A stretch of 32,415 nt of DNA. It comes from Oopsacas minuta. Its lineage: Eukaryota > Animalia > Porifera. The stretch spans positions 1-32,415 of the forward strand of contig JAKMXF010000076.1 in NCBI GenBank assembly GCA_024704765.1, given 5' to 3'. Below the pieces are notes generated by a model. It was not told the DNA's origin. It was given only the letters and a program-made list of their open reading frames with translations, and searched no databases. Below are positions 1-32,415 of this stretch, one piece after another. The position numbers and the translations under genes are program-made. Each line of letters opens with the position of its first letter. Position 1 is the first letter of the stretch.

Positions 1-516
1 GTTCAGTTCTCCTGGAGCTTTCTTGTTTGATTTCTTACAGCAGTAAGCAGTAGGCAGCTGTTTAGCCTTGTAGTCAGGTACAACAGGCTTCACTTGAGGA
101 GGGAAGGTGCGGGTGGGAGATATGTTAGTCTGACTGTTAAGCATAATACTCCCTAGCTGTTCTATGTCAGTCTCGAATTGATCGTTCCATTCAAGTGTAA
201 TACTACTGTCTGTCTCAGCTGTTAGCTCTGTTATCTTCTTATTGATTAATGATATAACTCCATCTAGAGTGTCTTTCAGTTCGTTATCTGTTAATGTATC
301 TGAATTCATTGATTTATTTGTATTCAAAGTCTCGACTAATTTATTCATTTTCTGAGTTTTGTTATTATAATCTTTCTCGATTTGATCAATACGAGAGAGG
401 AGGATACTCTCTCTGAGTTGTAGAGCTTCATGCGACCTCTTGAAGCAGTCTCTAATCTTACTTCTACTATCTTTTACTTGTTCGATAAAGTTTATTTTCA
501 CTTCTACGCTAGCCAT
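1..516 (-). CDS. Coiled-coil + NHL-repeat protein, paralogue C1 (3' part lies beyond the window start)
   Basis: Manual translation from ATG at 516: MASVEVKINFIEQVKDSRSKIRDCFKRSHEAL...QLPTAYCCKKSNKKAPGELN (172 codons, open to position 1). Nearly identical to the N-terminus of the 2548..3819 gene. Not in the ORF track. Confidence 0.93.
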   Translation of the reverse strand, partial: MASVEVKINFIEQVKDSRSKIRDCFKRSHEALQLRESILLSRIDQIEKDYNNKTQKMNKLVETLNTNKSMNSDTLTDNELKDTLDGVISLINKKITELTAETDSSITLEWNDQFETDIEQLGSIMLNSQTNISPTRTFPPQVKPVVPDYKAKQLPTAYCCKKSNKKAPGELN

Positions 517-1766
517 TTCTTTGTCTGCCGAATTTATTATTTTAGAATACAATTATATTATATATTTATTTGTGATTTGAATAGACATAAGCATACAAAT
601 TATGTCCCAGAGTATTAGCTAATATAGTAATAATAATCAATTAGTATAGGATATCAAATTCCCCCAACGAATAATACAGACGTACTCCCTCAGGAAACAA
701 AAACTTACTAACAGAGTATGCGAGTTCTCTTGTTTGATTTATTCGAAATACTATTTAGGGATCGATGATCTACTCGGAGATATCTCAATAATCTACAATT
801 GTTGAGATACTCCGAGGGGCACCCTTATATCATCCCAATCAGTGGGACGAAAGGTAGTAAATTAGCGGAACTTTTGGAGTTTCCTATTTCGCCTAATCCC
901 CAAAAAGAATGGTCCCGAATGGACTCTATTTCAGTCCCTCATGGATGCTCTCAGTACTTTTCGATACCTCCCATATTGATAACCCATTTACAGAACGGAC
1001 AAGTTTTGCTTGTGAAAAATGGATATTCTAATATAATATTTAAAGTTTTAACTCAATTTGCCTTGAAAATCGATTTATGGTTTAAGTTTTGGAGAAATAA
1101 TAAAGGTAGCGAGCAAATTCCAGAACGTAAGGCAGAACACATCAGCAAGTAAATTCTTTGAACTTGGTTTGATTCTTAGCAATTTCAGGATAGGACGAAC
1201 AAATAATTACAGAATATTAGGTCGCTTCAATTGGTATTAAATCAGTTACAAATATTTAATACTTCTATCCCGATATTAGGAAATTCGAGTGAGTACATCT
1301 ATGTGAGGAAAGTAAAATTACTGAGCACACGCGTACTAGTTGAATAGAGCAAATAGGTTAAACTTCCATTTGACCATGAGGTCCCTGATTGCGCCATCAG
1401 GCCGACCAAGTTGGACACTAATCCAAGGCATAATTCTAATCCTCACTTCTAATCGTGTAGTAAAGGGCGTGCCGAAATTCCGAGACGTGACGTTTGGTAA
1501 CCTCCCAAATTCATCATCCAAAGTGTATAACTAATTACCTATAAGCTTTATGTATTCTGTGCAATCCCTGCTAGGATATTTTTCGAATTATGCAGTCAGA
1601 TAGCTCTTATTGTTGTAATTTGGAATTTAGCGAAAAATTGACGAAGGGAAAATTGATTATTTGAATGTATATTTGGCTATTATCATTCTCGCATGTGGAT
1701 AGACTTATTAAATAGCTCTCCTGTTAATGCAGACTCCGGATAAAGCGGACAAATATGCAAATATCG

Positions 1767-1804
1767 CCGTCCGTTGGTGTTCGTATTAACGAGGTTCTAC
1801 TGTA
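1767..1804 (-). mobile_element. Terminal fragment of a Tc1/mariner-pogo-like MITE (second copy at 27055..27092)
   Basis: ccgtccgttggtgttcgtattaacgaggttctactgta matches 27055..27092 at 32/38 positions. The reverse complement begins TACAGTAGAACCTCG, a TA+CAGT terminus typical of pogo/Tigger-type ends. Family assignment is inference. Confidence 0.6.
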
Positions 1805-2156
1805 GCAAGTAAACCGTTAGGAAAACATCACCACGGAATTTTGCCTACTTCGGGTTCGGGTCGGGTTCTGAAAAGTGGGCCCGATTCCAACTCTGAACTT
1901 CATACTCGTCAAATATTTCGTAATTAGTACATTTTGTATTATTGTTGATATCTCAATCTACGCTGAGTACTCGAGGGGTACTTTGTAATATATCGAGAAT
2001 TTTCATCATTCTGATCGAGAATATTATATGGACCACCTTTCAGCTGGATAACTACCTCCCTCTAGCCAAGAAAAGCTTATTATGAGATCGAAAATTCGAA
2101 AGGGAAGTTTCTAGGCGGAATTTTTCTAAAATTCTAAAATGGATACAAAATTGACA

Positions 2157-2160
<4 letters not shown>

Positions 2161-2212
<52 letters not shown>
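2161..2212. repeat. (GATT)13 microsatellite
   Basis: 13 perfect GATT units read directly from the sequence. Confidence 0.98.
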
Positions 2213-2547
2213 ACCAGCGAAGTGAAATGTCATAACAAATTCATAGTAACTGTTTTTCTGTACTATTCTGTGACTTACAAAGCTAAATGTGCAATAAACA
2301 CAACAACGAATTTAAATTTTTCAAGAAAACTTATCCGTTCGTTTCGTGAATTAGGCATCTTGAGCTTAGATATAACAGGAGTTGACTGTAATTATTTCGT
2401 TGGGAATTTGATATCCTTACAAGTTGATTATTATTACTATATTAGCTAATACTCTGAGACCCAAATTGTATGCTTATGTGTATTCAAATTACTAATAAAT
2501 ATATAATATAATTGTATTCTAAAATAATAAATTCGACAGACAAAGAA

Positions 2548-3819
2548 ATGGCTAGCGTAGAAGTGAAAATAAACTTTATCGAACAAGTAAAAGATAGTAG
2601 AAGTAAGATTAGAGACTGCTTCAAGAGGTCGCATGAAGCTCTACAACTCAGAGAGAGTATCCTCCTCTCTCGTATTGATCAAATAGAGAAAGATTATAAT
2701 AACAAAACTCAGAAAATGAATAAATTAGTCGAGACTTTGAATACAAATAAATCAATGAATTCAGATACATTAACAGATAACGAACTGAAAGACACTCTAG
2801 ATGGAGTTATATCATTAATCAATAAGAAGATAACAGAACTAACAGCTGAGACAGACAGTAGTATTACACTTGAATGGAACAATCAATTCGATGCTGACAT
2901 AGAACAGCTAGGGAGTATTATGCTTAACGGTCAGACTAACAAACCTCAAACTCGCACCTTCCCTCCTCAAGTGAAGCCTGTTGTACCTAACTACAAGGCT
3001 AAACAGCTGCCTACTGCTTACTACTGTAAGAAATCTACCGACAAGAAAGCTCCAGGAGAATTGAACCGTCCCAGAGGTATAGCAATACATTACCAAACTG
3101 GAAATATTTACATAGCGGATTGTTACAACAATTGTGTACAAGTATTTAGCAGTAACGGAGACTATCTCTTCATGTTCAGTGAGAAGATGAACAACCCAAT
3201 AGGTATCTGTATATCTCAGAATAAAGTGTTTGTTACACAATACAATGGTCATTGCATTAATAAGTACGAGCTAGAAGGGAAACTAATCAAGAGTGTTGGC
3301 AGTTATGGGGATGGAGAAGCTCAGTTCTCCTTTCCATACGGACTAGATGTCTCTGATAGAAATAGCAATGTGTATGTATGTGATTTTTATAATAACAGAG
3401 TTCAAATCTTAACTCAAGAACTCAAGTTCCATTCCATGCTAGGAATAGACTTGTTTAGGTATCCACGTGACGTTAAGGTTACAAGAGACAGAGTATTGGT
3501 GCTAGATCGGAATGATCCGTGTATGTTTGTGTTCAATTCAGATCACGTTCTAACCAACAGACTAATAACTAAAGGTGATGGCAAACAAACAAACAATCCA
3601 ATCCGTTTCGACATAGACAGAGATTATAACATCATTATGAGTGACAACAATAATCACTGTGTATACATGTTCAATGAGGAGGGAGAACAGATACACAAGT
3701 TTGGGAAGGAAGGTCAGGGTATCGGGGAGTTCGATTGTCCATATGGAATAGCATTAGACAACACAGGACACATTATAGTTGTGTGTGAGAAGAAAACTAA
3801 TTGTCTACAATTCTTCTAA
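2548..3819 (+). CDS. Coiled-coil + NHL-repeat (six-bladed beta-propeller, TRIM-NHL-like C-terminus without RING/B-box) protein, paralogue C2, 423 aa, intronless
   Basis: First in-frame ATG is 2548 (the track start at 2512 is a TTG). NHL-type motifs: GELNRPRGIAI, IYIADCYNNCVQVF, GEAQFSFPYGLDV, GQGIGEFDCPYGIALD. The N-terminal ~110 aa look helical/coiled-coil. Confidence 0.93.
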   Translation: MASVEVKINFIEQVKDSRSKIRDCFKRSHEALQLRESILLSRIDQIEKDYNNKTQKMNKLVETLNTNKSMNSDTLTDNELKDTLDGVISLINKKITELTAETDSSITLEWNNQFDADIEQLGSIMLNGQTNKPQTRTFPPQVKPVVPNYKAKQLPTAYYCKKSTDKKAPGELNRPRGIAIHYQTGNIYIADCYNNCVQVFSSNGDYLFMFSEKMNNPIGICISQNKVFVTQYNGHCINKYELEGKLIKSVGSYGDGEAQFSFPYGLDVSDRNSNVYVCDFYNNRVQILTQELKFHSMLGIDLFRYPRDVKVTRDRVLVLDRNDPCMFVFNSDHVLTNRLITKGDGKQTNNPIRFDIDRDYNIIMSDNNNHCVYMFNEEGEQIHKFGKEGQGIGEFDCPYGIALDNTGHIIVVCEKKTNCLQFF

Positions 3820-3908
3820 CTGACTTTATTTATATAATTAGAGATTTGTGCCATTAGGGAAAAGATATAGAAGATATGTTAGTTTGATTGTTCATTATTT
3901 TCAATCAT

Positions 3909-4019
3909 TTATGATTTTGTCCAGCTGGGTAATTTCTTTGGTTCTTTTCAGGATCAAACTACCTAATCTCTAGTATTCTTTTGAATTTACATAGTTAGGT
4001 GTGAAAATTTAATTTTCAC
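3909..4019. repeat. Dispersed degenerate repeat; segments recur inverted at 17649..17711 and 31217..31265
   Basis: 3961..4019 acctaatctctagtattcttttgaatttacatagttaggtgtgaaaatttaattttcac aligns with the reverse complement of 17649..17711 (acctaatctccagcatgcttttgaattttacattttgaaaggtgtgaaaatttgattaatcac). The reverse complement of 3909..3953 (tcctgaaaagaaccaaagaaatt...aaatcataa) aligns with 31217..31265 (tcctggcaaagaaccaaataat...aaatcataa). Confidence 0.65.
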
Positions 4020-4356
4020 GAAAAAAGTGTGAAACATTCACTTTGTAAATATTCATACCCGAGGTGCAAACCCCTGACCCGGGATGTATATGTGTGCCCA
4101 TTTTCACTGCTAGATTTCGCACTATCGTTCGGACGTCGTACATCGTCCATTCCATTAAGTCACCTCCTGTAGGAGCTGCACTAACATGAGGGACACTGCT
4201 CCTCACAGTTACCGCCCTGTTTACACGTTGGAACAGGTTAAATTTATACAAGTTCCGCATGCTGATTCGGCGGATTTACGTGTTTATAGCCGACAATTAC
4301 TTATTTAATTATGAATTTTCATTTCTAACTAGCTATACTGCTATAGTATTATACAT

Positions 4357-7300
4357 ATGTCTGAGACTAACTCCACTCCAGTAGACACCTTTCAGACACC
4401 AAAGTACGAGTACTCTAGTCTCGTGAGTTCCCCAGCCTCTCACAAACTATCTCCCACCTTTCTATCCTTCCACCATTCATTCGGTTATGACCTACTTCGA
4501 CGTTGTAACTTATACGTCATAGATCCAGACACAGTAATGTATATCAGTGGTAACCTGGTTCACTTCCTAACTCTAAGTACCGGAGAGTTGTCCTATCTTC
4601 GGTCAGCTAGTGGTCATGGTTTAGGGGCACTAGCAGTGCATCCGTCCAAGCAGTTTATAGCTGTAGCGGAGAAAGGAGTGATGCCTGTCATAAACATATT
4701 CACATATCCCGGTCTAAGATTAGATCGTGTACTCAGAGGAGGTACAGAGACAGCTTATGCTCATTTGACCTTCTCTCCTGGTGATGGATTCAAGATAGCA
4801 TCTGTTGGAGGGAGTCCTGATTTTATGCTTACTGTATGGGACTGGAGACATGAAGCTATTGTACTCAGGACTAAAGCATTCTCTCAGGATATTTTCAGGT
4901 GCATGCGGATTTTGTGGGTTTGTGGTGGTTCAGACCTATTTTTACATATTTTGAAATTGTACGCAGATATTTCCATATATGGAACAATGCCATAGGTTGA
5001 TACGATATTCTTGTATATCCATAAACACTACAATTCATAATTCTCCCAAATTCGGTTACATTATTGTATGGAACTTTACTGTAATTACCATATTATTTCT
5101 AATAATACCCTCCCTGGGATAATATAATTTACCGGCTATTATTCGAGGTAATACAGTATTTGAATATCTTTCATATTTTATAAATACCAAAAATTCTCAT
5201 TATATCCGACTTGTTTTACCTGAGTTTCTTATTTTTCTAGAGTATCCTTCTCACCAGAGAATGAAGGTATTCTAACCTCCAGTGGAATAGGGCATATCAG
5301 ATTCTGGAAGATGGCTTTTACCTTCACAGGCTTGAAGCTACAAGGAGATATCGGTAAGTTCGGTAAGAGAGAGATTTCTGACGTCAGCGGGTATGCTGAA
5401 TTTCCAGATGGTAAAGTACTTAGTGGATCTGAATGGGGGAACTTGTTACTATGGGAGGGTGACTTAGTGAAAGTAGAGTTATGCCGCAAGAACCAGAAAC
5501 CCTGTCACGTCGGTAACATTGAGTTCGTGTTCCTCGACGAAGGAGAAATTATAACCGGAGGAGCCGATGGTATTATTCGTATTTGGGATTTCGAAGAGAT
5601 CGATCAGGCTGATGTCATTGATGATAATGATTTGATTGAGATAATACCGTTACAGGAGGTTAAGCTAGCTACACGTACAGGAGCAAGTGTTAAGCATCTA
5701 GCCAAGCTAAACGATCCAGACACACCCACTTACTGGGTGGTACAAGATAACAAAGGGTCGATATGGCGAGTAGATCTACAAGTAAGCCACACACACAAAC
5801 CACCTGAACGTCTATATACATTCCATTCAGGATCTATCACTGGCCTAGCTGTAAGCCTGAATTCACTACATGCTGTTACATGTGGATTGGATGGGAGAGT
5901 TAGATTGTATGATATAGAGGCTAAGAAATTTCTAGGTAGAACTACATTCAATATGGCAGCTACTTGTGTTGCTTGGTTGCCGTTATGGTTTGATGCTTTT
6001 GGCCTGTCTGTAATAGCTGGATTTTGTGATGGGATTATTCGATTATTGCATATAACTGGTGAAGACGGTCAGTCGCCGTTATCTACTGATAAAATTGAAG
6101 ATGATTCGAGTTTCACTTTGAAGCAAGTTCTAAAACCTCATTCAAAACCTGTGACTGCTATTCTACTTGGAGATAATTGTTCTAATCTTAACCTCGTGAC
6201 GTCGGCAGATGATAGCATTTTCTTTATGCTACAGAAAGATCAAAGTGCGAAAAGGGACACATTCATTCCGCTCGGATTTATGTCCATAGAGCATCCGGTT
6301 GTTAATCTCGCCTGGGCCCCGAGTAATACGAAAGACAAATTCACAGTATTGGCTTCGCTTAACAACGCATCTGTTCTTCTAATAACAATACCATCAAAAG
6401 GAGAATTCGACATAAGTACGAGCTATAAGCTGGAAGGAGTATTGCATCAAATATTCAGGTTTAAGAGTGTCAAATATGAAATTTTGAAGGCAGCAAGGGA
6501 TATAGAGCTAGAAGCTGAGAAGGCTAAAAAGTTGAAACAGGTAGAAGAGGATGGTCCCCCATCCACGACTTCTCTTACTCCTGAGGACGAACAGGAGATT
6601 GATCCTTATGCGGATTTACCAGCACCTCCAGAGATTCCCTCTCCCATACTACATGCGTTCTACCATGGACATTCTAACAATTTCTGGCTATGTATGGACT
6701 CATATGATTCAGAATATCTATACGAGTGCTGGATCAGCCCAGATGGCCCAGATCCTGATGGGGATCGTCCCCTTAAGGTCCTCCCAGTACCCAAAATATT
6801 CGGTGCAATCCAGCCAATCACTACCCTTAACTATACACAAAACAAAGAGTATATTATAATTGGTACTAGCAATGGACAGATACAAATCCATAAGGTTAAT
6901 ATTAACGGTAATTTATCACTGGATCAATTCTGGGCTATACCTATGAGTGACCCTGATGCAAAAGTTACACGCGTTTGTACTACGTATAATGATCAGTATA
7001 TTCTAGCTACTTCAGAAGACGGGAATTTCTTCTCGTTTAAAGTTGAGGAAAGACAATTGACCAGTGCGTCACAATATGAAATTTCTAATACAGCTGATAT
7101 AGATATATCAGCTGCTAAGGATATAGAAGATCCTAAACATTATTCCTTGGAAGAAGCCAGGCAGCGTGCAGAGAATGACAGGAAGTTGAAATTAGCTGAA
7201 GAACAAAAGAAACAAGTTATAGCACAAGTAAACAAACTCCGCAAACAGTTTAAACAATTTCAATCACGAAACAATAGTCTACCATCTCATATACAATTAG

Positions 7301-9897
7301 GAGAAGAAGAATTTATAATGGACAAACAGGCAGTAGAAGATTTCAATACTCAAACAATTGAGAGTTTAAAAATGGTAGAATTACAGCAACAATGGCTCCG
7401 TGAGAAATACATTATCGGATATGACAAGCTATATAACAGGTATAAGGCACAATTACAATCAGATACTATTATAGTGTATAGTTTCACGTCAGATGACGTT
7501 ATGACGCGTACATTACGTTGTTTGAAGCGCACGGATAGAGACAATGAGCTTTTGAATGAGGTCAGATCACAGACAAGTGAATCGTTCCGTTACAGTAGTA
7601 GAATGCTACCTAGCTCGAATCAACATGTGTATAATGAAAAGTCTGTTATACCATTAGCTTCTAGGAAAATATCCATAAAAACGGATGTTAGTGTTGATAA
7701 GCAGGGTAAGGGAGAATCACTTCGTTTACAGAGAAAGCAACGGTCTCAAGAATGGGCTCAATTAATCGCAGAAAAACCACAAGATAACTATCAACATCCT
7801 GATGATATAGTCCTGCTACATGATGCTGAAACAAATATGGGAGATTTCAAACTCAAAACTTCATCTGATTACACAGTTCCTGAAGACTTGAGAATGAACG
7901 CATCGAAGAAAAGAATACAGCTTGTGTTATTGAGGCAAGAAATACAATACCGTTCTGAGTTGTTTAATGAGAAAGTTATAGAGTTAAGAAATGAGAAAGT
8001 TGCGATAATTGACAGGTTCACTGTGTGTCTGGAAAGGTTAAAAGAAATCCAGTTGTCCTTACCGAAAGAGGATCAACTCTCTCTTCCTATAATTCCCCAC
8101 TTAAGGCCGGAAGAAGTACCAGAAAAGTCTTTAGAATTCAATGAGAAAGATTTGTTACATTTTGAGAAAAATTATCAAAAAAAGTTGGAGGCCAGAGCCA
8201 AGGCAAAACAGGGTGGAGAGGAACTCGGCGGATTCGGAGGGTTTGGTACCGCGGCACCCATAGACCAACCGGATGACGTAGATTCGTCTTCTGAGGCTCA
8301 AAGTAGCATTAGGGGTTCCCTCACTGACCTAGGGGACCCTGAAGACCTTGATGGTAAGAAATATCCCAAAAGTAAAGCTGAACAATCCTTACGTTATGAA
8401 ATGTTAACACGGCTAAAATATGAACGTGATTCACTACTCAGAGAGATTGAAACTGCGAAAAAGGCATTTGACGTGAAAGTTCGTTATCTTTCAAATTACA
8501 AAATTATTCTAGATTCGCAGATTAAACTCTCAGATTTGAGACATGTACTTTTGTTTGAAGAATATTTACTTTTGAAAGATTTTGAAAAGCGTGAACAGAA
8601 TTTTATAAGTAAACTGAAAGGCAAACAAAAAGATAGACAAGACATGCAAACTAAACTGAACACACTCAAAGAACAAACCGAAACGAAACAAATTTCAATA
8701 CATCATGGCCTTGAAAATCTTAAAGAATTGGAAGAGGAATTTCAGAGAGAAATCGCGAATAATAAATTCGCAGATTTCCTCCTCCGTGTGTTCAAGAAGA
8801 AGATAAAACGCGTGAAACAAGTTGAGAAGAAGGAAGAAGGGGAGAGTTCAGACGAGGAATCCGATTCAGATTTAGAATCAGATATTTCGAGTGATGAAGG
8901 TTCAGAAGCTTATAAAGAAAAGGCGTTTGACGATACCACATGCCCCCAGGGGTGTCAAGTGGCACTGTTTGACAAAGCCTGTGAACTAAGAGAATCTAGA
9001 ATGGATTTGGAAGAACAATTGAGTGAAGATAAGAAGTCACTCGAACTGTTGAAAAAAGATTCAGAGAATTCTGTTAAAAAAGCTAGAGTTATGGATAATG
9101 CTGTCAAAAACGCGAAATCTGATCTTGAAAATTTTCAGCTAGAAAAGCAGCATCGACTTAATGAACTAGAAGTGTTGGTTTTATTGCGAATTTCGCAGAT
9201 TTTGGTTGGAAAACCAAATTCAGATCCCCCACCAAATCTCAAGAACACTCTCGTTTTCTCTGAAAGCAACCTGAATCGTCTCAACATGCGAGCGGGCGAG
9301 ATCAGAGAAGAACAACTTGATCTCCGCCGGCAGAGAAAAGACCTTGAAGCTAAAAAGCAACGATTATCAAATGACAAGAAAACTATGGTTACAAAAGTAC
9401 AAGAACTTGAGAGCCAAGTTGACGAGATTATGATGCTGAAGTTTGGCCGTAAAGTCGATCTCGAATTCTTTGATCCAGTTGAACCTTCTAAAAATGTATT
9501 AGAAATGCGTGAACAAATTGGTAATTTCGAAAAGCAAGCGAGACAAGAGTTGATTGTGAGACAGGAAGAGATCGATTTGAAGAAACAAGAACTTGATGAA
9601 GTGCTACAACTCAACACACGTAGACTCCGTACTCTAACTCAGCTAATGGGAAAGATGAGTGAATATGAAAGCAAGCTAGAGATTGGAGAGAAGCAACTCG
9701 GGTCTGAATTCCAAAGTCCAGAATCTCATCTGACGTCAGATAATGCTGAGTTATCAAATTTAGTTAAAATGCAAGCTGTACAAATCGAGGGATTGAATCA
9801 TGAGATTCGTATTTTGTCTTTGAAGACCGGTCATGTACCTCCCCCTAGGCCCCCTCCGGTTCCCTCCCCTCTTTTTATGAAACAGACTCCAACATGA
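4357..9897 (+). CDS. CFAP44: Cilia- and flagella-associated protein 44 (WD40 repeats + long coiled coil), join(4357..4898,5241..9897), 1732 aa
   Basis: Recognisable CFAP44/WDR52 motifs: SFGYDLLRRCNL, VWDWRHEAIVLRTKAFSQD, GHIRFWKMAFTFTGLKLQGDIGKFG, SGSEWGNLLLWEG, DIEDPKHYSLEEA, GDFKLKTSSDYTVP. A GT..AG intron at 4899..5240 (phase 2) restores the frame DIFR-VSFSPENEG. Total 5199 nt, divisible by 3. Confidence 0.95.
5086..5158. mobile_element. 73-bp MITE-like element with terminal inverted repeats in the CFAP44 intron
   Basis: Left end taccatattatttctaataataccc versus reverse complement of right end tactgtattacctcgaataatagcc: 19/25 identical. TA at both ends (Tc1/mariner-like, inference). Confidence 0.6.
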
Positions 9898-20098: not shown

Positions 20099-23000
20099 AT
20101 GGCCTTACTGAGTGGCAAGCTTACGCCAATGAAACTTGATTTCTCAGATGATGCCAATGACATACCCGGGGGAGAAGATCTTGACCTCTTAACACCTGAC
20201 AACTCCTTCCTACACCTATCCCCTAGTATACTAACCCCCAATACGTCAGGTGATTTCCCTCTGTCCGCATCTACACTAGGCTCTTTTGCGGGTAATGATA
20301 GAAAAAATAGGATTAGTAGAAGGAGATCTAGCGTTATAGGAAGCTGTCTTACTCCTCCTCCTAAGCATAGACGGACTTCTAGACAGCTTAAGAATGATTC
20401 TCAATCTTCTATTCATGATACAGAGAAAGGTATTACGTGTATATGTATAATTGCTAGTCATAGTTTTCATGCTAACTTTAGCGTACTAAAATATTTACTC
20501 CTAAAAATTATGATACAGTCAACTCAAGTCTTATATTGTACAAATATGGTCCCAAAAAGTCAAAGTAGCAAAATTTCATTGGTCATACCCGAGTAAGTAT
20601 TGCGGTTCCTTAAGCTTCGATGTAACGGGAGTTGATTGTGTGTTGTGTATAACTCTATGTATCCATGTCTTCTGATATGAACTATGTATATACTCTATGC
20701 TGTTTTGCAAACTGATAGAATTTTATACGTGCATATTCATTAGAAAGTTTATTTCTGTATTAATGAGAACTTATCTATCCTAGATATAGAAACCCCAGAC
20801 GAATCTCCTATCCCCAGCACCACAACACTAGGTACACCCCCTTCTTCCTCTCAGAAACTAGGTACAGACATGTGTCAGCTGTGTCTCTTTGAACAACCAC
20901 AAACACCTAACACTTTACTGAAGAAAGCTCAAGAGAAACAGGAGAGTAGCAGTAGTGGTAGTCAGAGTTGTAGCAGTGATAATCAGCTGTTTACAACTCC
21001 TGTTAGTTATAATAATAGTTTCTCACAAGAAGAAGTGGACATTTCTTTTGATAAATTTCCTTCAAGGTATTTACAAACAGAATATTCGAGTACTTCTCTG
21101 GATTCTCATTTTTACTTTTGAGTTTCTTGTAAATTTATTGGGTAATTCATTGAGTTTTTTACAAGAAATTTGCAAACGCAATTTTACGAATCTACACATT
21201 TACAAATGTTCCATATTTTAGTACCTTCAGATCTAAATCACGTAGCAGACTACAGACTGCATTCACTGACTCTAGAGTAATACACCGCCGTCCTTCAGCG
21301 CGTAACATCAATCCATTTACTCCAGACCCGGTCGCTTACTCACGGAAACACAGTTCCTCTCTCCAACCCAGTCTCCATCAACTAAGTTCTCACAGAGAAA
21401 AAGATAGCACAAAGACGATAGAAGCTGGAGTAAGTGAAATGACAGAGGAGAGAGGTGAACGGAGAGATTCCAATTCTAATTCAGGTTCTAAACCTAAGAA
21501 ACTGGTACTTAGAGATAGCAATATCTCCAGATATAAACAGGAGTTCCACGAGGAGGCTCTTATTGGTCAGGGAGAGTTCAGTTCTGTTTATAAAGTAAGT
21601 TTATTTATTTTTGTTATTTAATCCGTGAAGCAACTCGTTAATAAACACAAACACTGATAAATGGCCCGATTGAATATAGAGCTCTGAATGCTATGCTAAC
21701 ACTGTTTTTTTAAGAATTTGGTTAAGAACTGAAAACGAATATTTCAATATTCTAAACACCTTTTCGGTCTGGGCATAGAGATAACCGAAGTTCGAATTAT
21801 TATTCAACTTCAGAGTTGTTACTAGAGCTGAGGAGTTTTGTCCTAGATTGCTACATACAATTCCCCCAGCAACCCCATGCTGAATCATTCATGTCACTAA
21901 AATAGGTTGCTGGAGCATGGAGGGCACCTAGCAAGCCTAGGTTACTGGATTATCCCTGTAGTCGCTTGTTAGAACCTTTGCACTTACTACATGTATTATA
22001 ACTTATATTTTCGCGTTGCATTTGCAACTTATTACAGTGAATTATTTCGGAAATAATCACATTATTTGCATTATATTTGCCTAAGGATGTCAGTGCTATC
22101 TGTAAATGAACAGAATACATCATATTCCACAAGTTACACATTGATACATGATATAACATATCTTTACAGCATCACATAAAGTTACATTATAAATTGTTCT
22201 AGAATATTCCAGTAGTCAGTTTCTGTTCTTATGACTTCTATTCAAACCTAAAATAGCATTGAGTTTACTGCAAAGAATATTCTAGATTTGAATATACACA
22301 ATAACTAATGTTCTAGAATATTCTAAATGTTCAATGCAAACCTACAGCAGATTTCAGGTTTATATAAATAATGTTAAACTTCGGAAAATTATTATAAAAC
22401 AAAATCTTCATATATTATCACGTTTACTATAACATGGCAGCCGCTATTGGTATTGATCTAGGCACCACCTATTCATGTGTGGGTATCTTCCAGCATGGGA
22501 AAGTAGAAATTATCGCTAATGACCAAGGAAATAGGACAACACCCAGTTATGTCGCATTCAATGACACAGAACGTCTGATCGGAGACTCCGCTAAGAATCA
22601 GGTTGCGATGAACCCTTCCAACACTGTCTTCGACGCTAAACGTCTTATTGGACGTCGTTTTGATGACCCTATCGTGCAGTCCGACATGAAATTCTGGCCG
22701 TTTTCCGTCGTAAACGAGGGTGGCCGTCCTAAAATCCAAGTTGAGTACAAAGGTGAAGTTAAGAAGTTCTTCGCTGAAGAGATCTCCAGCATGGTTCTCC
22801 TGAAGATGAAAGAAACTGCGGAGGCTTATCTCGGGAAAACAATCTCAGATGCAGTTGTTACCGTCCCTGCATACTTCAATGATGCTCAGAGACAAGCTAC
22901 CAAGGATGCCGGTGTAATATCAGGTCTCAATGTAATGAGGATTATCAATGAACCTACCGCAGCAGCTATCGCATACGGTCTTGACAAGAAAACAGGTGGA

Positions 23001-26000
23001 GAGAGACACGTGCTTATCTTCGATTTAGGTGGAGGAACCTTCGATGTGTCGGTCCTAGCAATTGATGAAGGAATCTTTGAAGTCAAGAGTACCGCTGGTG
23101 ACACACATTTGGGAGGAGAAGACTTTGACAACAGGATGGTTAGTCATTTCGTGGCTGAATTCAAGCGTAAAAACAAGAAAGATCTCAGCAGCAACAAACG
23201 AGCTCTCCGTCGTCTCAGGACTGCATGTGAACGCGCCAAACGTACTCTATCTCACAGCGCACAGGCTAACATTGAAATCGATACACTATTCGATGGGACT
23301 GACTTTTACACTACTATTACTCGTGCACGATTTGAAGAACTGAACCAGGATCTTTTCCGTGGAACACTCGAACCAGTTGAGAAATCACTTCGTGACGCAA
23401 AACTCGGCAAAGGCGAAATCCATGAGATCGTGTTGGTCGGGGGTTCCACTCGCATTCCAAGGATCCAAAAGCTTCTCCAAGAGTTCTTCAATGGAAAGGA
23501 ACTGAATAGGAGTATCAATCCTGATGAGGCCGTGGCATACGGAGCAGCAGTACAAGCAGCTATACTAAAGGGAGATACTAGTGAAGTTGTGCAGGATGTG
23601 CTTCTTATCGACGTAGCTCCTCTCTCACTTGGTATAGAAACAGCTGGAGGCGTGATGACTAACCTTATCAAGCGTAACACCACAATCCCTACCAAACAGC
23701 AAAACACATTCACTACATACTCTGATAACCAGCCAGCTGTAACTATTCAGGTGTATGAGGGAGAACGTGCAATGACGAGGGACAATAACTTACTCGGCAA
23801 ATTCGATCTGACTGGAATTCCGCCAGCACCAAGAGGAGTACCACAAATAGAGGTTACATTTGACGTAGACTCCAATGGTATCATGAATGTCAGCGCTGTT
23901 GACAAGAGCACGAATAAGATGGAGAAGATCACCATTAAGAACGATAAGAGCCGACTTTCTGAGGCTGATATCAAACGCATGGTTGATGAAGCTGAGAAGT
24001 TCAAGCATGAGGATGATGAACAACGTGAACGAATTGGTGCAAAGAACGGTCTAGAGAGCTATGCATTCCAAGCAAAAAGTACTGTCGAGGACGATAAAGT
24101 CAAGGATAAAATCACTGAAGAGGATAAGCAAGCTGTGCTTAACATCGTGAAGGAGACTGTAACCTGGCTTGACTCTAACCAAACCGCTACAAAAGAGGAG
24201 TTCGAAGGTAAACAGAAGGAAGTTGAGAAAGTATGTCAGCCTGTTATGATGAAACTCTACCAAGCTGGTGGTGAAGGTGGTATGCCAGGAATGCCCGGAA
24301 TGCCCGGAGGAATGCCTGGAGGAATGCCTGGTGGTATGGGTGGAATGCCAGGTGGCATGGGAGGCATGGGAGGTATGCCCCCGCAAGGAGGTGGAGACAC
24401 TAATATCGATCAAGTAGATTAAGTAGGAAGTCCTAACCCATCAGTAATGATGTTTCTTACATTAGCATAGATTTGCCCTCTATTCTGTTAGGAAATAGCT
24501 CTTATTGTTATTGTATTCTTGATCTTTTAGTTATTAAATTCTATTAATAGTAACAACTCAATTTATATCGGCGGGGGTGAAATGATAAATTTTAGGATCA
24601 TTGATTAATAGAAGTTGGGAGAGTTCTTATATAGTTATTACATAAATACTAAATACAGGTCTTAACTTATCTGGATCGTGGCTGCAAAAACGCTAAATTT
24701 GAACCTTATTAGTAAGCTTGCGTTCACATGAACAGTGAATACTGCTTTTGCAAGAGTACAGTATATGCCGGATATAAGAACACTAGCTCGATTAACCGAA
24801 TCTTTTGTATTGAACTCCATTGATTTTTGCTGGTAATAAGAACACGCCTCGCCGGATATAATAACGTTATTTGCTATCCATAAAAGTGTTCTTATAACCG
24901 GCATCCATTGTATACAGATTTATGCCTGTATGACGTCATGTTCTTAGGCGATAAGAAATTAGTAATATAAATGCTTGCCTATTTATAGTTGCAGCCATTA
25001 ATATAATTATGACCTGTTGGACTCATTTATTACATATTTTTGCTGCCATAAAGGACTAATATACTGACGTGTATACATGGAATAAATGATAATTTTAAGT
25101 GAATATATTTTCTAAAATATTATCTTCATCTTTGAATTCAGTATCGAATTCTAATTTCTTAATCTCCATCCCATTTTCCTTGTGAATCAGAGTTCTCTCT
25201 TGGTGTTTATTCTCCTGCTGGCATACTCCCATTTCCAATAGTCTTATTTCATTTGTTATCGCAAGTTCTAATACTTTAATTCGTTCACAATTCAAATTCA
25301 TTTTAATGTTAGCCTCTTCTACAAGAAATTTGAGATACTTTTCTTCCACTAGGATACTCCCATCTCTTCCAATTGGTACTTCTAGTCCCTGAGTGCTTCT
25401 CACTGCTAGCATTATCTTCTTACCAATTGAGAGGCCAGAATTCCTATAACCACATCCAACAGCTACCTGCAAAAAATATATACTGTTACATTTGTATATA
25501 CGTATTATTTGTACGGGTTGTTCGTGTGGTATGTGTATAGGTTATAGCTATTTGAAAAGTGGAAGCAGTTTTTCAGGGCTTCCCGTAAGTTAATAGTAGT
25601 ACGCTAAACATCCATAAACGGGGTACCATTTTTCAGCGTGGAAGTTACACTGCACACTCACTGACCATTTCGCCAGTCTTGTATGAGTCTATATGAGTGT
25701 TTGTCAAAAGCCATTATTCATTTGAAACATAAATTCGATATTTATGAGACAGGATTTTTGAGAAATATATTTTCTATTATTCTGTCGTCTCTGTACTCTA
25801 TTTCACTCACCTTCATAAGTGCTTTTGAACACTCAATATTTGCACAACACACGTGAAGTATTAGAGGTTCGAACTTTAATGTAATAACATTACATACAAT
25901 CGTAACCTCCCTCTTCAATGCTACAATTACGTCATCAATATTACATTCCTTATGTGATGTGTATATCCACTTACAGTTGTGTTTAATGCCAGCTGACTTT

Positions 26001-29329: not shown

Positions 29330-30601
29330 TCAAAAGAATTGTAGACAATTAGTTTTCTTATGACACACAACTATAATGTGTCCTGTGTTGTCTAGTGCTA
29401 TTCCAAATGGGTAACTGAACTCCCCGATACCCTGACCTGTTTTCCCAAACTTGTGTATCTGTTCTCCCTCCTCATTGAATACGTACACACAGTGATTACT
29501 GTTGTCACTCATAATGATGTTATTGTCTCTGTCTATGTCGAAACAGTTTGGATTGTTTGTTTGTTTGCCAACACCTCTAGTTATTAGTCTGTTGGTTAGA
29601 ACGTGATCTGAATTGAACACAAACATACACGGATCACTCCCATTTAGCACCAGTACTCTGTCTCTTGTAACCCTAACGTCACGTGGATACGTAAACAAGT
29701 CTATTCCTAGCATGGAATGGAACTTGAGTTCTTGAGTTAAGATTTGAACTCTATGATTATTACAATCACATACGTACACATTGCTATTTCTATCAGAGAC
29801 ATCTAGGCCACGTGGACTGTTGAACTGAGCTTCTCCATTCCCTTCACTACCAACACTCTTGATTAGTTTCCCTTCTAGCTCGTACTTATTAATGCAATTA
29901 CCAAAATATTGTGTAACAAACACTTTATTTTGAAATATACAGATACCATCTGGTTTGTTCATCTTCTCACTGAACATGAAGAGATAGTCTCCGTTACTTG
30001 TAAATACTTGTACACGATGGTTAAACATATCAGCTATGTAAATATTTCCAGTTTGGTAATGTACTGCTATACCTCTGGGGCAGTTCAGTTCTCCTGGAGC
30101 TTTCTTGTTTGTAGATTTCTTACAGCAGTAAGCAATAGGCAACTGTTTAGCCTTGTAGTTAGGTACAACTGGCTTCACTTGGGGAGGAAATGTCCGGGAG
30201 GGAGATATGTTAGTCTGACTGTTAAGCTTAATACTCCCTAGCTGTTCTATATCAGCTTCGAATTGATTGTTCCATTCAAACTCAATACTACTGTCTGTAT
30301 CAGCTGTTAGTTCTGTTATCTTCTTGTCAATAGCTGATTGAATTATTTGATGAACGTCAGTGAGTTTATTTGCGGAGAATATCTCTGCAGTGTGTGTTAT
30401 TTCTTTATTCAAAGTCTCTAGCAATTTATTCACTTCCTGATTTTTGTTATTATAATCTTTCTCTATTTGATCAATACGAGAGAGGAGGATACTCTCTCTG
30501 AGTTGTAGAGCTTCATGTGACCTCTTGAAGCAGTCTCGAATCTTACTTCTACCCTTTTTTACTTGTTCGATAAAGTTTCTGTTCACTGATACGCTAGCCA
30601 T
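29330..30601 (-). CDS. Coiled-coil + NHL-repeat protein, paralogue C3, 423 aa, intronless
   Basis: Complete ORF MASVSVNRNF...KTNCLQFF, colinear with C2; 37 differences in the 254-aa NHL region (manual count). Confidence 0.94.
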   Translation of the reverse strand: MASVSVNRNFIEQVKKGRSKIRDCFKRSHEALQLRESILLSRIDQIEKDYNNKNQEVNKLLETLNKEITHTAEIFSANKLTDVHQIIQSAIDKKITELTADTDSSIEFEWNNQFEADIEQLGSIKLNSQTNISPSRTFPPQVKPVVPNYKAKQLPIAYCCKKSTNKKAPGELNCPRGIAVHYQTGNIYIADMFNHRVQVFTSNGDYLFMFSEKMNKPDGICIFQNKVFVTQYFGNCINKYELEGKLIKSVGSEGNGEAQFNSPRGLDVSDRNSNVYVCDCNNHRVQILTQELKFHSMLGIDLFTYPRDVRVTRDRVLVLNGSDPCMFVFNSDHVLTNRLITRGVGKQTNNPNCFDIDRDNNIIMSDNSNHCVYVFNEEGEQIHKFGKTGQGIGEFSYPFGIALDNTGHIIVVCHKKTNCLQFF

Positions 30602-30880
30602 TTTGTATATTTCACTTTTGCTTAGCTTTGAAAACTTTACTATCTATACCCCTATATAAGAGCTCAAATATCATATAACAGCCTACAGGAATTTATTGCA
30701 TTATTTTGTGGTGTATAAATAAGCTATCTTATCTTTTTGAATAAATTTTCTACGAGGAGCTTCGCTTCGTGCCTCGATGTTTTGTAAGGACGAATATTTA
30801 CACGCGACTTCAAGTAGCGAAATTCGAAAAACAGAGTGCTCGATTACCCCGGTATAACCGTTGAAACTAAGCTCTGCAAC

Positions 30881-30970
30881 TACAGCCGAAACCAGTTTAT
30901 TCTTACTTATTGGTGTTTTATTGCTAAATTTCCTGCAAACGAATAATAAGAAAAACCGGTTTCGACTGTA
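30881..30970. mobile_element. 90-bp MITE with TA-terminated inverted repeats between NHL C3 and C4
   Basis: Left tacagccgaaaccagtttattctta versus reverse complement of right end tacagtcgaaaccggtttttctta; TA at both ends as in Tc1/mariner-pogo elements. Confidence 0.75.
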
Positions 30971-31356
30971 TTCAGAAATTTGTTGACTTTATATTCATAA
31001 AAACAACAAATAATTCATATGTGTGAAAATTGGATTCAGCATAGTCTATATATTTGTCAATTTATATTGAATTCTGTTTACTTTCTTGGTAAACAAGATA
31101 AATATGTTCTATAACACATAATACTTAGAATTAAGCAATGAATAATTCTAAGAATTGGGATATAGAAATTTAATAACTAGAGCCCCTGTTGGTATATATT
31201 TGAAATTTTCTTGCTCTCCTGGCAAAGAACCAAATAATATCTTTCGGCGGGATATTAAATCATAAGATATATAGTAACCACATAATCCCTATAGGCTCTT
31301 ATATAGGGGTATAGATAGTAAAGTTTTCAAAGCCAAGCAAAAGTGAAATATACAAA

Positions 31357-32415
31357 ATGGCTAGCGTATCAGTGAACAGAAACTTCATCGAACAAGTAAA
31401 AGAGGGCAGAAGTAAGATTCGAGACTGCTTCAAGAGGTCACATGAAGCTCTACAACTCAGAGAGAGCATCCTCCTCTCTCGTATTGATGAAATCGAGAAA
31501 GATTATAATAACAAAAATCAGGAAGTGAATAAATTGCTAGAGACTTTGAATAAAGAAATAACACACACTGCAGAGACATTCTCCGCAAATAAACTCACTG
31601 ACGTTCAACAAATAATTCAATCAGCTATTAACAAGAAGATAACAGAACTAACAGTTGATACAGACAGTAGTATTGAGTTTGAATGGAACAATCAATTCGA
31701 GACTGACATAAAACAGCTAGGGAGTATTAAGCTTAACAGTCATACTAACATATCTCCCACCCAAACCTTCCCTCCTCAAGTGAAGCCTGTTGTACCTGAC
31801 TACAAGGCTAAACAGCTGCCTACTGCTTACTGCTGTAAAAATTCACACAAGAACGCTCCAGGAGAACTGAGCCGTCCCAAAGGTATAGCAATACATTACC
31901 AAACTGGAGACATATACATAGCGGATTATTGCAACGATCGTGTACAAGTATTTAGCTGTAACGGAGACTATCTCTTCATGTTCAGTGAGAAGATGAACAA
32001 TCCAGTAGGTATCTGTATATCTCAGAATAAAGTGTTTGTTACACAATCGTATGATAATTGCATTAATAAGTACGAGCTAGAAGGGAAACTAATCAAGAGT
32101 GTTGGCAGTAAAGGGAATGGAGAAGCTCAGTTCAACAGTCCACGTGGCCTAGATGTCTCTGATAGAAATAGCAATGTGTACGTATGTGATTGTTATAATT
32201 ACCGAGTTCAAATCTTAACTCAAGAACTCAAGTTCCATTCCATGCTAGGAATAGACTTGTTTAAGCATCCATGTGACGTTAAGGTTACAAGAGACAGAGT
32301 ATTGGTGCTAGATAAGAGTGATCCGTGTATGTTTGTGTTCAATTCAGATCACGTTCTAACCAACAGACTGATAACTAAAGGTGATGGCAAACAAACAAAC
32401 AGTCCATTCTGTTTC
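31357..32415 (+). CDS. Coiled-coil + NHL-repeat protein, paralogue C4 (3' end lies beyond the window)
   Basis: ATG at 31357, open for 353 codons to the window end: MASVSVNRNFIEQVKEGRSK...GELSRPKGIAIHYQTGDIYIADYCNDRVQVF...GKQTNSPFCF. Not in the ORF track because there is no stop. Confidence 0.94.
   Translation, partial: MASVSVNRNFIEQVKEGRSKIRDCFKRSHEALQLRESILLSRIDEIEKDYNNKNQEVNKLLETLNKEITHTAETFSANKLTDVQQIIQSAINKKITELTVDTDSSIEFEWNNQFETDIKQLGSIKLNSHTNISPTQTFPPQVKPVVPDYKAKQLPTAYCCKNSHKNAPGELSRPKGIAIHYQTGDIYIADYCNDRVQVFSCNGDYLFMFSEKMNNPVGICISQNKVFVTQSYDNCINKYELEGKLIKSVGSKGNGEAQFNSPRGLDVSDRNSNVYVCDCYNYRVQILTQELKFHSMLGIDLFKHPCDVKVTRDRVLVLDKSDPCMFVFNSDHVLTNRLITKGDGKQTNSPFCF

Follow-up and report, generated by a model that had tools for sequence, protein, structure and literature searches.

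A germline family of NHL-propeller proteins in the glass sponge Oopsacas minuta with one diversified face: a probable repertoire of intracellular binders

Four copies of an intronless NHL gene and their family

The contig JAKMXF010000076.1 of the glass sponge Oopsacas minuta (assembly GCA_024704765.1), which was analysed in its entirety (32,415 bases) and is referred to below as the window, contains four intronless paralogues, C1 to C4, of one gene that encodes a helical protein with a C-terminal NHL beta-propeller. The best protein matches of the window all come from O. minuta, and a full copy of the gene has 423 residues. C2 (2548..3819, plus strand) is complete, with 423 codons and a stop codon and no intron in its open reading frame (ORF) and translation (Pfam NHL E = 4.7e-26); its ORF begins 12 codons downstream of an in-frame stop. 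C3 (29330..30601, minus strand) is likewise complete by ORF and translation, with 423 codons and a stop codon (Pfam NHL E = 2.1e-24). The other two copies run off the window. C1 (1..516, minus strand) is cut by the window start and retains the first 172 codons, up to the start of the propeller (translation; tblastn with C3, 76% identity over residues 1-173), while C4 (31357..32415, plus strand) is cut by the window end at codon 353, inside blade 5 (translation; tblastn, 87% identity to C3). The NHL propeller occupies 3049..3816 (plus strand) in C2 and, by ORF and translation, 29330..30100 (minus strand) in C3. An earlier annotation of the window that used the sequence only (the sequence-only reading) had recognized the C2 propeller and placed it at 3055..3819; the domain stands, with slightly different limits.

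A repeat search of the window shows that the copies are arranged as two head-to-head pairs. C1 and C2 form an inverted repeat (20..3044) with arms at 20-646 and 2418-3044 that are 96% complementary and span ~130 bp 5' of each ATG together with the N-terminal halves. C3 and C4 form a second one (29540..32415), whose 5' arms (30114-30663 and 31295-31844) are 95% complementary and whose propeller arms (29540-30118 and 31837-32415) are 91% complementary.

C2 and C3 have no Pfam matches other than NHL repeats and related models of six-bladed propellers, and both pass the threshold of PF01436 (89.9 and 84.7 bits, respectively, vs. a cut-off of 20). In an AlphaFold2 model of C2 made from 54 homologues, helices are found at residues 10-74, 78-99 and 113-121, the long helices 10-74 and 78-99 having a predicted local distance difference test (pLDDT) score of ~66-84. 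A low-confidence linker (residues 119-166) follows, and then a six-bladed propeller (residues 168-423) with a pLDDT of ~90-96. The propeller is modelled with 24 strands, and a strand ahead of blade 1 (residues 156-158) closes blade 6. The top match of a profile search of the PDB is the NHL domain of TRIM2 (E = 5e-40), followed by those of Thin, TRIM3, TRIM71 and Brat. Foldseek matches the model to TRIM71/LIN-41, Thin, TRIM2/3 and Brat, with template modelling (TM) scores of ~0.8-0.87 and root-mean-square deviations (rmsd) of 2.1-2.6 Å; for TRIM71/LIN-41 the values are 0.86 and 2.3 Å. No family match was found for the N-terminal helical part, which looks coiled-coil-like in the model and probably dimerises.

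The sequence-only reading had also proposed that the proteins lack a signal peptide, a RING and a B-box and would thus be cytosolic, and our scans bear this out. Neither RING nor B-box has a Pfam match in C2 or C3. Among the 120 best homologues (see below), no signal peptide is seen, the N-terminus being hydrophilic and without a hydrophobic start, and none has a 19-residue window hydrophobic enough for a membrane segment. Given such an N-terminus and the lack of a membrane-grade hydrophobic window, the proteins should be cytosolic or nuclear, and a cytosolic location is the probable one.

The family is large. A total of 797 proteins match at E <= 1e-3, the best of them being O. minuta proteins of 414-423 amino acids. 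The 120 best homologues comprise 23 proteins from O. minuta, which has at least 23 on record, and 97 from a second and related assembly (ENA ERZ25071281), in which family copies are found, for example, on a contig of 1.2 Mb (locus L002). At the loci that we sampled, the copies are scattered among unrelated housekeeping genes. Identity is 71% between the O. minuta and second-assembly sets and 78% within each, and 22 of the 23 O. minuta proteins form a clade of their own (support 0.99) that includes none from the second assembly, as expected from concerted evolution or lineage-specific expansion. The second-assembly genome thus has an expansion of its own, which is probably the larger one. O. 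minuta and other assemblies also encode more distant proteins (27-39% identity) that agree in length and architecture, namely: L010 (686-1882), P0168, P0198, P0204 and P0206. The helical-plus-NHL design would therefore be older than the hypervariable subfamily.

Hypervariable positions and diversifying selection

The sequence-only reading had described C2, C3 and C4 as sharing a near-invariant propeller framework in which the same two motifs are replaced blade by blade. The motif triplets that it quoted are all present in the sequence (in the order C2/C3/C4), namely: ADCYNNC/ADMFNHR/ADYCNDR; TQYNGH/TQYFGN/TQSYDN; QFSFPY/QFNSPR/QFNSPR; CDFYNN/CDCNNH/CDCYNY; LFRYPR/LFTYPR/LFKHPC; and QTNNPIR/QTNNPNC/QTNSPFC. 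Its manual counts are reproduced as well, with 37 NHL residue differences between C2 and C3, and 28 non-synonymous and 7 synonymous codon differences between C2 and C4 over 187 codons. Its estimate that about 26 of the 37 C2-C3 differences belong to the two motif classes may be compared with our counts: 21 of the 37 fall at the 26 hypervariable sites defined below, and 28 fall either at those sites or in the loops between strands D and A or B and C of the blades. Only 2 of the 37 are in the opposite (A-B/C-D) loops.

Column entropy over the 120 best homologues reveals two hypervariable patches per blade, one around a conserved Pro immediately before strand A, and the other in the two or three residues following the Asp or Gln at the end of strand B. 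Laid out in rows of 43 residues, the domain shows its selected sites in two columns. The set of 26 hypervariable sites, supported by entropy on the 97 independent second-assembly proteins and by posterior probabilities of the M2a site model, makes up 10% of the propeller domain. In C2 (plus strand), the 26 codons start at 3067, 3121, 3124, 3193, 3199, 3241, 3244, 3304, 3328, 3331, 3337, 3385, 3388, 3394, 3457, 3460, 3466, 3508, 3595, 3601, 3646, 3649, 3733, 3736, 3742 and 3787. Pairs among the 120 homologues differ on average at 76% of these sites vs. 14% of the other 230 propeller residues, and 119 of the 120 homologues have a site signature of their own. Across the same homologues, insertions and deletions are almost absent from the domain, and its loop lengths are constant. 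A hypervariability pattern of this kind lies far beyond chance. At the variable sites, Tyr accounts for 16.6% of residues (4.8-fold enriched) and Trp for 3% vs. 0 elsewhere, Arg and His are enriched ~2-fold, and Lys, Glu, Gln, Trp and Met are all present, while Pro is absent; as far as composition goes, this would be typical of binding hot spots.

The contig begins and ends inside NHL copies and repeated genes assemble poorly, which raises the question of an assembly artefact, with collapsed or chimeric paralogues or sequencing errors mimicking hypervariability. However, variation falls at the same 26 sites across 120 proteins of two independent assemblies, and the reading frames are unbroken. 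Errors would neither cluster in two loop classes nor spare silent positions. The probability of such an artefact is negligible.

Mapped onto the strands of the AlphaFold2 model, 22 of the 26 sites are located in D-A or B-C loops, and the remaining 4 occupy the second position of strand A, right after the conserved Pro. By comparison, none of the 50 residues in A-B or C-D loops is variable (loops only, p = 4.8e-5). Both the D-A and the B-C turns of a four-stranded meander lie at one end of the blade, and the model thus places all 26 sites on one face, in keeping with the suggestion of the sequence-only reading that the variable residues are clustered on one surface rather than scattered: by topology, 26 of 26 are at D-A/B-C positions. 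The N-terminal strand serves as the outer strand D of blade 6 and runs into a D-A loop, and thus the variable face is predicted to be opposite the entry of the N-terminal linker.

In order to measure selection, we collected 10 loci around homologues; the 20 distinct coding sequences obtained comprise 17 of O. minuta and 3 of the second assembly. Circularity was avoided by defining an independent set of sites on the 97 second-assembly proteins only, namely 21 sites with an entropy >= 2 bits. With a fixed tree and the GY94 codon model, the ratio of non-synonymous to synonymous substitution rates (omega) is 3.57 at the 21 independent sites, compared with 0.51 for the propeller framework and 0.52 for the N-terminal part, and the tree length is 31.8 substitutions per codon at the 21 sites vs. 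2.5 in the framework. With the 21 sites given their own synonymous rate, omega = 1 is rejected (twice the log-likelihood difference, 2dlnL = 19.9, p = 8e-6). The signal emerges only once the sites are separated, as the whole-domain dN/dS by the NG86 method is only 0.6-0.8.

Site models lead to the same result. The PAML models were run with our own pruning-likelihood code, for which the M0 log-likelihood (lnL) of iqtree was matched to the third decimal. The lnL values are -5271.16 for M1a, -5118.05 for M2a, -5298.75 for M7, -5271.32 for M8a and -5128.43 for M8. M2a places 9.2% of sites in a class with omega 6.25 (2dlnL = 306 vs. M1a), and M8 places 10.3% in a class with omega 5.86 (2dlnL = 341 vs. 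M7 and 286 vs. M8a); the M7 vs. M8 comparison is the one that the sequence-only reading had suggested. In the M2a posteriors, 19 sites exceed 0.95 and four further sites exceed 0.5, and 15 of the 19 belong to the 21 independent sites.

Because recombination can inflate site-model tests, we added per-blade and tree-free tests. When each blade is analysed on its own tree, M1a is rejected in favour of M2a in 6 of 6 blades (p from 5e-4 to 1e-16, omega 3.2-7.3), and the same sites are recovered. The tree-free check uses eight disjoint closest pairs, whose frameworks are 91-95% identical in nucleotide sequence. Among single-base codon differences in these pairs, 48 are non-synonymous and 5 synonymous at hypervariable codons, compared with 179 and 123 in the framework (Fisher p = 4e-6). 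At only 5-9% framework divergence, 73% of the hypervariable codons differ. Several independent tests thus agree on diversifying selection in the family, as the sequence-only reading had proposed, and they support its action on the diversified face. The N-terminal part also contains a class of sites with omega 3.4 in M2a (8% of sites, 2dlnL = 58; sites 59-90 flagged), but this signal is tentative because the region is strongly recombinant.

The hypervariable codons also have a raised proportion of synonymous differences (pS), at 0.375-0.42 vs. 0.13-0.14 in the framework, i.e. about 2-2.5 times as high. The best joint fit of pS and its non-synonymous counterpart gives omega ~3.6 and dS ~0.4. Saturation as the sole cause was rejected, as dS at the framework value with an omega of 6-10 predicts a pS of 0.20-0.25. 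Older coalescence of the variable codons than of the homogenised scaffold, multi-nucleotide changes, or a higher local mutation rate may be responsible.

The same observation would suit targeted mutation in place of selection, in which the 26 codons are hypermutable, or are rewritten from a template in the manner of diversity-generating retroelements (DGRs), and their variability is neutral. It would also suit the fact that 57% of the differing hypervariable codons in the closest pairs differ at two or more bases. However, omega is still 3.6 (p = 8e-6) when measured against the sites' own synonymous rate, codons located 1, 2 and 3 positions away show no comparable rise (pS 0.18, 0.15 and 0.09, respectively), and the residues are biased to Tyr, Trp, Arg and His, with Pro absent. 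DGR-like mutagenesis in particular was rejected. Unlike in DGR targets, where changes are adenine-specific and spare the third codon position, changes in the sponge family are spread over the three codon positions as 92:80:70, and those involving adenine make up 58% in hypervariable codons vs. 56% in the framework. We consider targeted mutation a very unlikely account of the variability.

Mosaic structure of the copies

Homology between paralogues stops within a few bases of the ATG and of the stop codon (median pair). The history of C2 can be followed in a duplicated segment (1850..5415, plus strand), identified by blastn and a MAFFT identity profile, whose second copy is at the end of contig JAKMXF010000111.1 (locus L010, 9229-12705). 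The flanks of this segment and the start of the neighbouring WD40 gene are 94-100% identical between the two copies, while identity in the C2 coding region is only 65-94% in blocks of 150 bp. In the same pair, pS reaches 0.30 in the N-terminal part, compared with 0.10 in the framework, and the divergence of the flanks is roughly 3%. As the coding divergence is far above that of the flanks, the coding region of the C2 pair has been overwritten from other copies after the duplication.

Further signs of exchange are found along the gene. The nearest paralogue of C2, C3 and C4 changes repeatedly from one part of the gene to the next. Four-gamete incompatibility, measured at informative sites outside the hypervariable set, rises from 20% of site pairs at <= 10 nucleotides to 46% at 121-300 nucleotides and then reaches a plateau. 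The pairwise homoplasy index (PHI) detects recombination over the whole coding sequence (p = 0.001), while inside the propeller framework it does not at a window of 30 informative sites (p = 0.77), nor is it significant at third positions; the null result within the propeller is explained by the decay of linkage within ~100 nucleotides, i.e. by very short tracts. The copies are thus fine-scale mosaics, a feature that the sequence-only reading does not mention, and gene conversion limited to the coding region shuffles the family. In the N-terminal segment of residues ~54-97 (2707-2838 in C2), a small number of discrete sequence types have been reshuffled among the copies: C1 and C2 share one type with a copy at locus L003, and C3 and C4 share another with a copy at locus L004.

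This also bears on whether the variable loops are simply released from constraint, drifting while conversion homogenises the remainder. Loops are usually the least constrained parts of a propeller, and gene conversion does homogenise the scaffold here. Drift, however, gives omega <= 1, and the values observed are 3.2-7.3 across all blades; the 50 loop residues of the opposite face include no variable site; and loop lengths never change, though relaxed loops gain insertions and deletions. Furthermore, conversion tracts of ~100 nucleotides would homogenise the variable codons that are interleaved with the framework, and thus erase the variation unless selection retained it, so that its persistence is a further argument for selection. 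Relaxed constraint alone is therefore highly improbable.

About a quarter of the family copies at the sampled loci are truncated, frameshifted or interrupted by a stop codon, namely those at L005 (17532-18800 and 4700-5599), L007 (1-729), L003 (1917-2804) and L002 (2-597). Such copies would indicate birth-and-death turnover, and they may possibly serve as pseudogene donors for conversion. In one subgroup (L001, L004, L006 and L009), the copies have ~165 bp after the stop codon in common, ending near ...CATAAAAATAGGTTAAGA, after which two types of flank follow. The duplication unit of this subgroup would accordingly seem to be the coding region plus a short tail resembling an untranslated region. 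Retroposition or a mobile cassette was considered and set aside, as no poly(A) tract is seen after the ~165-bp shared tail; target duplications were not looked for.

The variable face, its possible role and the neighbouring genes

The closest structural relatives of the family are the TRIM-NHL proteins (TRIM71/LIN-41, TRIM2, TRIM3, Thin/TRIM32, Brat and Mei-P26). As in the sponge proteins, an N-terminal outer strand closes their six-bladed NHL propeller (about 23-29% identity, TM up to 0.87), and a helical region lies ahead of it. In zebrafish LIN-41, RNA is bound on the 'upper' surface of the propeller, opposite the preceding filamin domain, and the first strand completes blade 6 (PMC5908797). 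The top surface is also where RNA binds in Brat and Mei-P26 (PMC9070667, PMC8421216). The RNA-binding face of the TRIM-NHL proteins, which is opposite the N-terminal entry (PMC5908797, PMC9070667), is thus the face that varies in the sponge family, and in the model the variable face would correspond to the 'upper' surface of LIN-41. This comparison of RNA contacts is one of topology, as HMMER alignments to the TRIM2, Thin and TRIM71 chains are blade-shifted and out of register. The two groups differ in other respects. The sponge proteins have no RING, B-box or filamin domain, and their propeller is mildly acidic overall. Furthermore, the TRIM-NHL proteins are single-copy, conserved developmental regulators, whereas the sponge family has dozens to hundreds of members and an omega well above 1 on the predicted binding face.

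These likenesses raise the possibility that the proteins are endogenous post-transcriptional regulators, in which the face binds RNA and the paralogues split the RNA targets of the cell among them, and non-self recognition plays no part. Among solved folds, the closest are indeed RNA-binding NHL domains, the variable face matches the RNA face of LIN-41 and the RNA specificity of NHL domains is evolutionarily plastic (PMC5908797), and the enrichment of Tyr and Arg suits contacts with nucleic acids. Stable targets, however, predict purifying selection after divergence and not an omega of 3-7 even in the closest pairs, and they sit poorly with 119 unique signatures among 120 and with the turnover that the quarter of truncated or stop-containing copies points to. 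In addition, the isoelectric point (pI) of the whole propeller domain is ~6.2 (range 4.9-8.1), where a basic value would be expected; this is only a weak hint against RNA binding via a basic patch. We regard this alternative as unlikely.

The explanation that we favour, and consider quite probable, is that C1 to C4 belong to a large germline family of small, probably cytosolic proteins, each with a helical part and a six-bladed NHL propeller, which forms a repertoire of intracellular binders. In this family, the scaffold is nearly constant while ~26 side-chain positions on one face are replaced several times faster than silent sites. Gene conversion keeps the scaffold uniform and reshuffles the variable patches. 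The variable face would be the ligand-binding face, as it is for RNA in LIN-41 and Brat, and each paralogue would have a different binding specificity, such that the family amounts to an inherited set of intracellular binders whose diversity is kept by selection. The likeliest targets would be ones that change fast, namely viral, microbial or selfish-element proteins or nucleic acids, or else non-self cytoplasm. An immune or anti-viral role, which the sequence-only reading had suggested with caution, would be conceivable.

Several observations weigh against this explanation. No effector domain (RING, caspase, death-fold, TIR or NACHT) is found by Pfam in C2, C3 or the longer and more distant relatives that were scanned. 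The placement of the sites on one face reflects the secondary-structure topology of the model and is not a measured solvent exposure, and the mildly acidic propeller is not the strongly basic one expected if the ligand is RNA. Recombination breaks the single-tree assumption of the site models, which the per-blade and tree-free tests mitigate but do not remove, and the synonymous divergence of the hypervariable codons is itself raised. Finally, four public runs of one sample cover the window (the kind of run is not on record), and the C2 coding region has a much greater summed depth in them than its flanks, but many paralogues pile up there, and the depth shows neither expression of C2 nor its copy number.

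Among described systems, the closest in principle is found in the fungus Podospora anserina, where the WD40 propellers of HET-E and HET-D (HNWD) are kept uniform in scaffold by concerted evolution and have a few hypervariable sites per repeat, which are under diversifying selection and located on an interaction surface (PMC12222747, PMC4986451). Both cases involve an intracellular propeller with a uniform scaffold and selected surface sites in a syncytial organism. They differ in fold, being WD40 in the fungus and NHL in the sponge, and the fungal ligand is known (HET-C). Furthermore, the fungus shuffles repeats within and between genes, whereas the sponge genes exchange tracts and their six blades are mutually unlike, and the sponge proteins have neither a HET effector by Pfam nor a NACHT or NB-ARC match in C2, C3 or the scanned relatives.

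Other systems can also be compared. Fish finTRIM and primate TRIM5alpha are intracellular, antiviral products of multigene expansion that join a coiled coil to a C-terminal B30.2/SPRY sensor, the surface loops of which are under diversifying selection; their sensor is B30.2 and not NHL, and they keep the RING/B-box effector that is missing in the sponge family. Lamprey variable lymphocyte receptors (VLRs) and the leucine-rich repeats (LRRs) of plant NLR proteins have a constant repeat framework with fixed hypervariable positions per repeat on one surface, and are diversified by gene conversion or cassette copying. Theirs is an LRR solenoid, however, and VLRs are assembled somatically, while nothing in the sponge family suggests somatic change. 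The 'eukaryotic-like proteins' of sponge symbionts also have NHL repeats in a sponge setting, but they are bacterial or archaeal, whereas the sponge family is found on host contigs among animal housekeeping genes.

In a bolder version of the favoured explanation, this syncytial animal would use the family inside its cells to recognise self and non-self, or parasites. The system would be built on NHL propellers and diversified by conversion limited to the coding region with truncated copies as donors, and would thus be convergent with the HET-E/HET-D incompatibility receptors of the fungus and with cassette-copying systems such as VLRs and chicken immunoglobulins (Ig). It could also rank among the earliest-branching animal cases of a germline receptor repertoire that is hypervariable. 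We consider this version possible but doubtful.

LRR, Ig, B30.2 and WD40 scaffolds are known to carry diversified recognition repertoires. We found no report of one on an NHL propeller, nor of any repertoire in glass sponges. In the literature searched, we found no paper on this family, none that joins Oopsacas minuta with NHL, and none that joins NHL, propeller and diversifying selection. The genome paper of O. minuta does not mention TRIM or propellers, that of Aphrocallistes vastus does not mention NHL or propellers, and neither hexactinellid genome paper names NHL; the matches for Hexactinellida and NHL concern symbiont proteins. Should the face bind fast-evolving targets, the family would be a candidate intracellular repertoire in a very early-branching, syncytial animal, and the NHL face would be a naturally evolvable surface, with hundreds of variants on one rigid scaffold, useful for studies of specificity and as a framework for binders. 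It would also offer a clean case of conversion and diversifying selection acting on interleaved codons of one gene.

Between the C1/C2 and C3/C4 pairs, the window carries unrelated genes, namely a WD40/EML/CFAP43-like gene and an intronless HSP70 gene. The former (4357-9897, plus strand) consists of two long ORFs that encode WD40/EML-like beta-propellers followed by a CFAP43-type coiled coil. One of the four public runs (X2) contains a spliced contig in this gene that joins 4896 to 5239, skipping 4897-5238 with GT..AG ends; run X2 thus contains RNA, and the WD40 intron is supported. The HSP70 gene (22434-24422, plus strand) is complete and encodes 662 amino acids (Pfam E = 7e-256).

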